Shown piece after piece: positions 7,706-10,816 of a stretch of DNA of 64,000 nt. Each line of letters opens with the position of its first letter. Positions within the stretch are counted from its first letter, which is position 1. Below the pieces are notes generated by a model. It did no database searches. It was not told where the DNA came from and worked only from the letters and a program-made list of their open reading frames with translations. The position numbers and the translations under genes were made by a program. The DNA is from Cycas panzhihuaensis (Eukaryota; Plantae; Cycadophyta): NCBI GenBank assembly GCA_023213395.1, contig CM041465.1:184395741-184459740 (forward strand), in the 5' to 3' direction.

Positions 7706-8450
7706 ACTTCATAGGCGGAATATGCAGAATGCAGACATAGGGAATCTATTTAGGTTCTGCAACCCCGAAGCCTCTCCCAACCCAGGTAGCGTCTGGTTGT
7801 GTCGATCTTTCTATTTATGTATCTCTTTGTGTACAACGCCTTTCATACGCAAGACTCTTTTTGGGCTTTCTTCGTTGTACAGTTTTCTTCGAATTTCTCT
7901 GATAACTTTATGTTTGCTGCCTTTTGGATTGCTGGAGTTGGTGTTCATGTCCTTGTGCTCGTGGGTCTTCCGTTTTCGGTTCCTGTGAGCCGGCGTAGTT
8001 TGGGATTTATTTTTTCGTTTTGTTTTTTTTAAAGCTCTGTTAGGGTTGTTGATTCTGGTAGGAAAATGCTTCCCGTGCTTCCTTCTCTTCAAATTCAGGA
8101 CAATCCTTAGTCGTTATTTGGAGTACTTAATAAGAATTTAGAGTTTTGCAGACATGCTTGGGAATCTGGAGGAAGCTTTTCAATTCATTTGCTTTTTCAT
8201 GTGACAGCCGCCGGAGATGATATCCGGAAGCTGCAAACTGTAGTGTTTATAGTGTTTAGTATTTTTATCTGATATCATGGATTGTTTCTTGCCTCCCTTT
8301 TAGGGTGCCAAACAATCAAATTTGGGTTTACTAAATCTCATCAGGCTTTTGTGTTGATGGTATCTGTAACCTCAAGCATGCAGATGAAAGATGGGGGATG
8401 GGGGTGACCCTGTCGAGCTGAATACTTCAGTGAATAATGGAGAGGAGCTC

Positions 8451-8539
8451 CTCTGGCAATGAAAGTCGCAGTTAAGCATTGGTTGAGATTTGAATAAAGA
8501 TTGCCATCGTTTGTTATGGAATGATTTATATTGCCAGGG
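8451..8539 (+). ncRNA. pre-miRNA-like hairpin, apparent paralog of 8863-8960
   Basis: 8451-8468 pairs with 8522-8539 (17 of 18 paired including G-U). The arms share gcaatgaaa and attgcYaggg with the 8863 hairpin. Confidence 0.5.
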
Positions 8540-8862
8540 CCAGACCTTTGCATTTGCAGAGTCGGTGAATATTGCCTTTCTATCTAGTTTACAGTGAACG
8601 GCTGGTCATCCAGTCTCGTTTGTTGCTGCATGGGGTTTACACTGTTAATGTTTTTCATTTGGATCAAAACTACTTCTGTCGACGGCAGAGGGGGTAGGCA
8701 TATAGACACGCATTGTTAGTTGTTATCTTTGGATACACTACCGTATAAACATAGGTGCTTATTTGTTCAACCTTAACCTATTTATTTGTTCAGAGGGTTT
8801 GAGATGGGCGGACAGGAGCTTTGTAGCAACCGGGTGTTGGTATGGTTTTAGCATGTGAGATT

Positions 8863-8960
8863 CAAATGCAGAGGAATGCCCTTAGCAATGAAACGCACAG
8901 GCTGACGGGATTGCACTCGTTACTGTGAATTTTATTGCTAGGGGTAGTCCTTCGCATTTG
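8863..8960 (+). ncRNA. pre-miRNA-like hairpin (best-formed of the array)
   Basis: Uninterrupted 17-bp stem 8877-8893/8930-8946 (3 G-U), plus caaatgc/gcatttg, cacag/ctgtg and tgacggg/ctcgtta. No match to any conserved miRNA family I recognise. Confidence 0.65.
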
Positions 8961-9720
8961 TGTTTCCAGTGACCACAAGGGGTTTCGCGAGGCCAAACAG
9001 TGGGACGTGATTTTCCCTTGCTAGGAAAGCATGTTGATATTACTGGATGCAGATTGGATTGTGTATGATTTTTGATCAAGGCATGGCACACAACGTGCTG
9101 CGGATGGATACGTATTCTTTTGCTGGATGTGAAGGGTTCAAGCTATGGCAGTTTCTGCTCGAAGGCGGTTGTGGCCAACCCACGGGTTGCTTTGAGAGCT
9201 TCAGCACTCTGAATAGAAGCTTGTATTCACTGGGGTTTGATCAGTAAGAAATTCCTACTATACCATATGCCTGCTAGAGGTTTGTCTGGCTTTTTAGAGC
9301 TTGCTGGCATGGTTGTGGTCTGGCTAATGATTTTGTCATCTGATCTCTTGTAACAGAAGCTGTGTGGTTTATCTTAGCCCTGTGATACGGCCATGTGTGC
9401 GGCTTGGGCTTGGGTTTTGTTTGTTGTCAACCCTGTGTGCGCTGATTAGGGTTAGGGTAAAGAATCAGTCACAGTGAAAGGCCGTGTGGGCTGGGTAAGC
9501 GTATGGATCCATTTCCTTTCTTATTGGATCGCCTGTGATTTTTTAACATTAATGAGAAGTGAATTGTTTTTTGTTAGATAATATTCTGCACCAAAATAAA
9601 TCAAATCTTTATTCAGTATTTTGATTACTCTGATGTTCTTATTGTCCGTTGTATGAATTTTTAATTTTATATTGTCTGGTGTTTCATTTTTAATTAAATT
9701 AATTAATTTTTGGCTTGAAG

Positions 9721-10193
9721 GAGCTATTGTATCACTTGACAGGGAAAGTGTTTACATCCGCTCAGGTTCTAACGTGAAATAGAGGCTACACTAATTGCAA
9801 AGGATAAACAGCTGCACCAAAAACCTTGTACTCACAGGGTTGGTAACTTCAGGTAGTTTGGCCTTATTTGCATCTATTTATCTAATGGTTGGGAAGTTGG
9901 AATGTGTTTTCTCGTTTGTAATTTTCCATCCGTTCTTTTCTACGTTGCAATGCAACGCCAATGGCAAATCATTAATCCTATGTTGTAGAGAACTCACTGA
10001 CGTTTGAAATTCATGATCTTATTTAAATGGCCAAAATAATTCATGGATTGCGCTTGAAACCCTGTTTCCTCTTGCAAACTGCACCTGTAAATTTCTGCAG
10101 GAAAGTTCAGAGGGTCTTGGCGAGAGAATTTACTTGTAGAAATTTGTGTTCATGCATTGACGCCTTCCCCTGTCAAGAGGAAACATCATGCTT
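9721..10193 (+). ncRNA. Intron-split hairpin (arms 9721-9780 and 10127-10193)
   Basis: cttgacaggg pairs with ccctgtcaag, and imperfect pairing extends over ~60 nt on each arm. The predicted intron 9853-10100 lies in the loop. Confidence 0.5.
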
Positions 10194-10816
10194 TTTGGAA
10201 CGATAATAAGCTTAGTTTTGGACAGGTTTAGCAGTCACTTCAATTCCGTGTAGGGTTGTTCTTTCTTTTCACCTACCTTCTTGTATCATGGTTTTCTTGG
10301 GCTGGCAAGAAATGGATCGGCTATTCTTGAGCACAAATTCCCTCATCCATTTTTGGTTGAAATCAAAATTATTTGTGTATTTTTTTTAAATAATAGGTAA
10401 ATGCATGGAGAAATAATTAAAATAAACATTATTATCAATGTTGAGGAATTTTATTTGAAGTTTTTAATGATGTTTGAGTGTAGTCCCAACTTGAGTCTAT
10501 CCTCTCAATTGAAATTCACAAGTTTAAGCATTGTTGATTTTTTTTTTTAAAGGAGATATTAAATGTTTTTGTCAGTGATTCCATTTTATCTTCACTAGAT
10601 CTTAACTTGCAAATGGTCTTTTAATAGTTTCAGTGGTATTTAAGAGTATGTGGGTTGCCTTTATATTTGTTCTCTAAAAATGATTATATTTACTCTGTAA
10701 AAATGATTGTGAAACTTGGAGTACGTGATTAATAAATGTTAAGATAGGGGCAAGATAGAGAGAGAATAACTAATGTAATTTCTTTAATCATAAAGAGGAT
10801 TGATTCAAGATGTTAT

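Follow-up and report, generated by a model that had tools for sequence, protein, structure and literature searches.

The stretch analyzed here, referred to as the window, comprises 64,000 nucleotides of Cycas panzhihuaensis DNA (contig CM041465.1). At 7720-10430 it carries a locus without coding capacity in which two stem-loops of the + strand, hpA and hpB, stand out from their surroundings. The two are homologous to each other, and the minus-strand translations of both 3' arms read as GLPL, a motif of the NB-ARC domain in NLR immune receptors of plants. The locus is probably a MIR-type gene whose microRNA (miRNA) products would be directed against NLR mRNAs. The hairpins, with folding free energy (dG) and z-scores relative to shuffled sequence, and the mature strands predicted for hpB are as follows.

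8436-8554, + strand: hpA, a weaker paralog of hpB, with a loop larger by 24 nt and a 5x5 internal loop where the predicted duplex of hpB forms.

8863-8960, extending to 8857-8966, + strand: hpB, a strong pre-miRNA-like hairpin (dG -55.1 kcal/mol, z -9.69).

8873-8893, + strand: predicted 5p (star) strand of hpB, a sense-like GLPL copy with a 5' G, its position derived from the fold.

8932-8952 (21 nt) or to 8953 (22 nt), + strand: predicted 3p guide strand of hpB, with a 5' U, antisense to E-G-L-P-L-A-I codons.

The original prediction for this locus had described an array of about 14 back-to-back hairpins. Each listed stem-loop was folded against 100 dinucleotide-preserving shuffles, a 19-nt item at 8673-8691 being too short for the test. 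On the + strand, the 13 testable stem-loops gave, in listed order, z-scores of -0.34, -0.58, -2.36, -0.28, -4.02, -0.34, +0.17, -9.69, -2.13, -0.30, -0.15, -0.79 and -2.51. Eleven of them, between +0.17 and -2.5, fold about like the shuffles, and the only outliers are 8863-8960 and 8451-8539, i.e., hpB and hpA. A 100-nt sliding scan of 7700-10450 yielded a mean z of -0.23 on the + strand and -0.16 on the - strand, indistinguishable from the background of -0.25 for 150 windows drawn at random from other parts of the 64 kb; outside hpA and hpB, z stays near 0 along the putative second exon of the host transcript. The listed hairpin at 9721-10193 needs a 14-nt, 93% complementary inverted repeat with its halves 415 nt apart, and its unspliced z of -2.5 is unremarkable. 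The + strand of the locus is G+T-rich (GC skew ~+0.2, AT skew ~-0.2), and the illusory folds at 7720-10430 arise from this composition, which permits many G-U folds and is preserved by the shuffles. The remaining listed hairpins are chance folds of GU-rich sequence.

These results bear directly on the model from which the array was drawn, in which one spliced RNA polymerase II transcript carries more than 10 mostly non-homologous miRNA hairpins or acts as a highly structured scaffold long non-coding RNA. Plausible GT-AG introns with T-rich interiors, the lack of an open reading frame (ORF) and the presence of two genuine hairpins agree with it. It is contradicted, however, by the shuffle controls (z from +0.2 to -2.5 for 11 of 13 testable hairpins), by a regional mean z equal to background and by the lack of any Rfam family match; moreover, the only two hairpins that stand out are paralogs. 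We consider this model very improbable. Nothing points to an unusually large small-RNA operon or a scaffold RNA, since the remainder of the stretch is indistinguishable from shuffled sequence in its folding, and what stands of the proposed polycistronic MIR or structured RNA locus is a plausible non-coding MIR-type locus that contains more than a single hairpin.

The prediction that no coding ORF is present was borne out. The longest ORFs listed at 7720-10430 span 40-125 amino acids, are not protein-like and have no Pfam, PDB or protein-collection match, and no ORF on the + strand of the putative exon 2 (8035-9494) exceeds 70 amino acids. Pfam, PDB and word-indexed protein homology searches with a 69-amino-acid ORF lying over hpB returned no relatives, while 10 local and 6 distant ORFs of the window were all absent from a collection of 15 billion proteins searched by exact look-up. 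Rfam found no match at the gathering threshold in the entire 64-kb window; in E-value mode, the region 7000-11000 returned noise only, the sole miRNA match being MIR3627 (E 3.5, 17.8 bits vs a 64-bit cutoff). A tRNA search found none, and a scan for bacterial-type promoters and terminators was uninformative for plant DNA.

With a simple repeat at ~3000-4400 set aside, hpB is the most stable 110-nt fold of the window. Its stem of ~45 bp is interrupted by 1x1 and 2x2 internal loops only and ends in a 6-nt terminal loop; the slightly larger segment 8855-8970 has a dG of -61.3 kcal/mol (z -9.86), and none of 200 shuffles folded as well. The + strand is more stable than the - strand by ~18 kcal/mol because of G-U pairs; the 8849-9000 fold has 56 pairs, 11 of them G-U. 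The repeat itself (2950-4420) is a ~1.4-kb compound (TA)n/(TG)n-type simple repeat with overlapping 400-amino-acid 'ORFs' in several frames. It harbors the most extreme self-folds of the window (to -72 kcal/mol per 110 nt), which are a low-complexity effect and do not mark a gene. The next-best local folds outside GC-rich repeat lie at 36781-36890 (- strand) and 38159-38258 (+ strand), at -46 kcal/mol and z -3.6.

The 2018 MIRNA criteria of Axtell and Meyers reportedly call for a single foldback of <300 nt whose miRNA/miRNA* duplex region is free of secondary stems and large loops. The duplex is said to tolerate up to 5 mismatched positions, of which no more than 3 may be asymmetric, and to have 2-nt 3' overhangs; for processing, at least 75% of the reads should reportedly come from the duplex, in at least 2 libraries, with lengths of 20-24 nt. 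hpB is an unbranched foldback of 98-110 nt, within these limits. In the register predicted from the fold, 8873-8893/8932-8952, its duplex would contain one 1x1 mismatch, no bulge and 2-nt 3' overhangs, again within the limits. The predicted 5p strand lies ~15-17 nt above the base of the stem and ends atop a 17-bp perfect helix. It has no second copy in the 64-kb window at up to 3 mismatches, and the predicted 3p guide (8932-8953) is likewise unique there. An alternative, loop-proximal register at ~8880-8900/8923-8943 would use the part best conserved with hpA and spans the P-L-A-I codons too.

hpA is the weaker of the two hairpins. The segment 8451-8539 has a z of -4.02, and the extended segment 8432-8560 folds with a dG of -38.3 kcal/mol and a z of -2.43; the fold is unbranched but contains the 5x5 internal loop. 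The hairpins lie 429 nt apart and share a mean column identity of 73%, with conserved blocks confined to the arms. The comparison of the two units gave a z of 6.7, while the comparisons of spacers all gave z <0: the ~300-nt spacers before, between and after the hairpins have no mutual similarity above shuffles, and no further diverged copy was found at the 429-nt period. Conservation of the arms while the spacers have become unrecognisable fits a constraint acting on the arms. When the pairs of the hpB fold were mapped onto hpA, 51 were comparable: hpA shows no change in 22 of them, preserves 8 through a change on one side and 3 through compensatory changes, and has lost 18. Both copies retain pairing in the core 8880-8893/8930-8943, with a compensatory change from A-U to G-C among the pairs there. 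As compared at the sequence level, hpA is probably a decaying sister copy, or else one that is processed in a different register.

A rival reading is an inert relic: an NLR fragment underwent a small inverted duplication, was later duplicated locally in intergenic DNA rich in transposable elements (TEs), and is untranscribed or unprocessed, or yields sporadic small interfering RNAs (siRNAs) only. The decay of hpA is plain to see, 18 of 51 comparable pairs having been lost; no relatives turned up in the protein collection or in metagenome scans; and the surroundings are rich in TEs (copia Pol at 40.4-42.3 kb, and repeats). Against such a relic, hpB is near-perfectly paired over ~45 bp despite ~27% divergence between the paralogs and spacers that have diverged beyond recognition, has the size, shape, 5' U and overhang geometry of a canonical pre-miRNA, and is flanked by a CpG-rich, apparently hypomethylated block and plausible splice sites. 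We regard the relic as unlikely, though it is the most serious competitor of a functional gene.

What links the hairpins to immune receptors is the coding sense of their arms. Minus-strand translation yields K-C-E-G-L-P-L-A-I-K for the 3' arm of hpB (8959-8930) and K-C-K-G-L-A-L-A-I-stop for that of hpA. The published MEME consensus of the GLPL motif in nucleotide-binding site (NBS) genes is ...KKCGGLPLAI... (PMC3368180, Table 2), and by this reading both 3' arms are antisense to the NB-ARC GLPL motif of plant NLR immune receptors. Both have the arrangement by which NLR-targeting miRNAs are recognized, a guide antisense to the coding sequence of a conserved NB-ARC or TIR motif. The pattern KC.GL[PA]LAI occurs twice in the six-frame translation of the 64 kb, both times on the 3' arms of hpA and hpB, and in none of 300 dinucleotide shuffles; the looser pattern C.G[LM][PA]L[AV][ILAV] turned up in 1 of 300. 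Apart from these arms, the six-frame translation of the window contains no NB-ARC motif, which indicates an isolated fragment and not an NLR pseudogene.

The 5' arms are sense-like, reading ...C-R-G-M-P-L-A-M-K... in hpB and ...R-G-A-P-L-A-M-K-V-A-V-K-H-W-L-R... in hpA, where the reading runs into the loop. Set against NLR sequences in general, this 5' arm and loop of hpA seem similar to the residues that come after GLPLA in the NB-ARC domain. Between the antisense arms of hpA and hpB, 3 of 6 differences fall on synonymous third-codon positions (G, L, L), a small sample; the same pattern of third-position divergence is described for miR482/2118 miRNAs co-evolving with NLR codons (PMC5026261). 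The GLPL motif in the arms is the informative feature of these hairpins, and it had been overlooked when they were first described.

Should the hairpins instead be TE-derived foldbacks, such as a miniature inverted-repeat transposable element or another short inverted-repeat element, the GLPL reading would be coincidental. Foldbacks of ~100 bp are indeed common in large plant genomes, and the two copies lie close together. Yet no further copies exist in the 64 kb at up to 3 mismatches or by self-BLAST, the ends of the hairpins show no target-site duplication, and the KC.GL[PA]LAI reading is found in both copies and in 0 of 300 shuffles. These observations make an origin as a TE foldback improbable.

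Beyond the hairpins, the locus contains the following features of a possible host transcript and its upstream region.

8035-9494, + strand: putative exon 2 of the non-coding host transcript, carrying hpA and hpB and otherwise unstructured and GU-rich; a candidate exon by splice-site consensus only.

7786-8034, + strand: candidate intron 1, 249 nt, GT...AG, 47% T, with the junctions CAG/GTAGCG...TTTTAAAG/C.

9495-9720, + strand: candidate intron 2, 226 nt, GTAAG...AG, 74% A+T and 47% T, with the junctions TGG/GTAAGC...TTGAAG/G.

9853-10100, + strand: candidate intron 3, 248 nt, GTAG...TGCAG, 38% T, with the junctions CAG/GTAGTT...TTTCTGCAG/G.

5600-7720 (5500-8000 in the profile of observed/expected CpG, o/e), no strand assigned: CpG-rich block of diverged repeats directly upstream, CpG o/e 0.8-1.3, GC ~48%.

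The three GT-AG intervals that had been proposed as introns are present and have good consensus splice sites at the sequence level. They are T-rich (47, 47 and 38% T vs 21-36% in the putative exons) and are compatible with a spliced pri-miRNA. The claim that CpGs are retained within the array was not upheld: CpG o/e at 8000-10500 is only 0.43-0.68 vs 0.46 for the window as a whole, and the CpG-rich block lies upstream instead. The block ends at the proposed transcript start and consists of units of ~220-260 bp that are 75-82% identical by self-BLAST; each contains a palindrome of the type GGGACCGCG...CGCGGTCCC plus a GTTATAAAT motif. The block looks like a repeat-built, hypomethylated CpG island and may act as a promoter region; alternatively, it may be a repeat or TE that has nothing to do with the locus.

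Directly downstream of the locus, at 10803-11025, an AT-rich unit of ~104 bp is present in tandem duplicate (88-93% identical), and a small inverted repeat lies at 10759-10836. The remainder of the window is TE-rich. One example is a 631-amino-acid ORF at 40416-42311 on the - strand, which encodes Pol_BBD, gag_pre-integrase, rve, SH3_retrovirus and the start of RVT_2 and represents a Ty1/copia retrotransposon fragment. GC skew on the + strand is positive throughout ~29 kb at 8000-37000 (+0.14 to +0.35 in most 1-kb bins), and its sign flips near 37-38 kb; the orientation of the TE content or a long transcription unit may be the cause.

Weighing this material, we favor a functional two-hairpin, NLR-targeting MIR-type gene, non-coding and with one strong and one decaying copy, and put its probability at roughly 60%. 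The two tandem paralogous hairpins would descend from the inverted duplication of a short NLR (NB-ARC) fragment spanning GLPL. The + strand would be transcribed, with both hairpins on one possibly spliced non-coding transcript. Counted from the base of the hpB stem, a first DCL1 cut at ~15-17 nt would release a duplex of ~21 nt, 8873-8893 / 8932-8952/3, from which the 3p strand, with its 5' U, would load into AGO1. Being antisense to ...C-x-G-L-P-L-A-I... codons, this strand would direct the slicing of NLR mRNAs to their GLPL site; a 22-nt form of it could also trigger the production of phased siRNAs (phasiRNAs). hpA would be an older or degenerating sister copy. Transcription, splicing, the dicing register, AGO loading and the targets are what we infer here; the hairpins, their homology, the antisense GLPL reading, the missing coding capacity and the lack of excess structure elsewhere are what the sequence shows.

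Several points weigh against a functional gene. In the register of hpB, hpA has 5 consecutive mismatches and falls outside the duplex limits given above. The - strand of hpB also folds well (z -6.1), leaving the + strand as the presumed transcribed one. The predicted hpB duplex is devoid of an asymmetric bulge, for which reason the 22-nt phasiRNA-triggering form is not predicted for hpB. The NLR link consists of a 10-residue motif, which is too short for Pfam or PDB scoring and was recognised post hoc. No homolog outside the window was found in the protein collection or in pattern scans of metagenomes for the arms; the first scan gave 0 matches and the second 6, with a GC content of 41-61% and neither a hairpin nor an NB-ARC context, which were taken as chance. 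Phylogenetic support for the structure is limited to one paralog pair. A more far-reaching version of the functional gene, in which hpB founds an undescribed gymnosperm miRNA family that targets NLR GLPL and is released from a spliced dicistronic pri-miRNA under a hypomethylated CpG-island promoter of diverged tandem repeats, is tentative and would seem to us rather doubtful as a whole.

MIR genes are said to be born by inverted duplication of their target gene, a model that goes back to Allen et al. in 2004. Both that model and the spruce precursors of the MIR482q/r/s type resemble the present locus, since the arms here keep a readable piece of NLR coding sequence. Some MIR482 precursors retain similarity to NLR genes, which supports birth by inverted duplication (PMC4651229). 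The arm of MIR482q, however, is 176 nt long with 57 codons of NLR similarity (PMC4651229), whereas only ~10-15 codons remain here; hpA and hpB would for this reason be mature shortened hairpins and not young long foldbacks.

The miR482/miR2118 superfamily comprises the miRNAs of seed plants that target the NLR P-loop, with 24-26 loci in Norway spruce. Its members share with the present locus a short hairpin with a guide arm that runs antisense to the coding sequence of a conserved NB-ARC motif, a 3p guide with a 5' U (predicted for hpB), tandem or clustered paralogous hairpins and third-codon-position divergence (PMC5026261, PMC4651229). The arms here, in contrast, read GLPL and not the P-loop (GMGG[IV]GKTT), show no sequence similarity to the superfamily, and the hpB duplex lacks the asymmetric bulge that would predict a 22-nt product. 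Membership in the superfamily was rejected on the GLPL reading of the arm and on the lack of an Rfam match at the gathering threshold.

In Norway spruce, >750 NLR genes yield phasiRNAs triggered by 19 miRNA families, and the NBS region is the target of eleven 22-nt families (PMC4651229). Conifers have many lineage-specific NLR-targeting miRNAs, some of them derived from inverted duplications of NLR genes (PMC4651229), which include miR946, 950, 951, 1311, 1312, 3697, 3701, 3709, 3710 and 11476-11546 (Xia et al. 2015, Table 1, PMC4651229). The present locus would be of the same biological class. Compared by eye, none of the spruce sequences in that table matches either arm; the nearest entry, miR11482, shares only the 8-nt AGUCCUUC, which covers the codons E-G-L of a different motif (W-I-A-E-G). 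From the arm sequences, no named family is assignable, and this comparison by eye with the tabulated sequences does not show family membership. A search of full-text literature with 18 arm 13-15-mers, in RNA and DNA spelling, returned only unrelated coincidences with primers. The locus also recalls the polycistronic MIR clusters of plants (MIR395, MIR166, MIR2118) in having two homologous hairpins ~430 nt apart on one strand, plausibly within one exon of a spliced non-coding transcript; it differs from them in having just two hairpins, of which one is degenerate, and in that co-transcription is putative. At the level of prediction, the locus fits the known class of NLR-targeting MIR genes.

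Together, the locus reveals no new kind of RNA operon or scaffold, and it offers a practical lesson, as GU-rich plant sequence gives many illusory hairpins that shuffle controls remove. If hpB is expressed, it would add one more NLR-silencing miRNA, next to a conifer miRNA-NLR network that is already very large, and would exemplify guides that target the GLPL motif instead of the P-loop. It would also capture a snapshot of the birth of a MIR gene from a fragment of its target gene, followed by tandem duplication and the decay of one copy.

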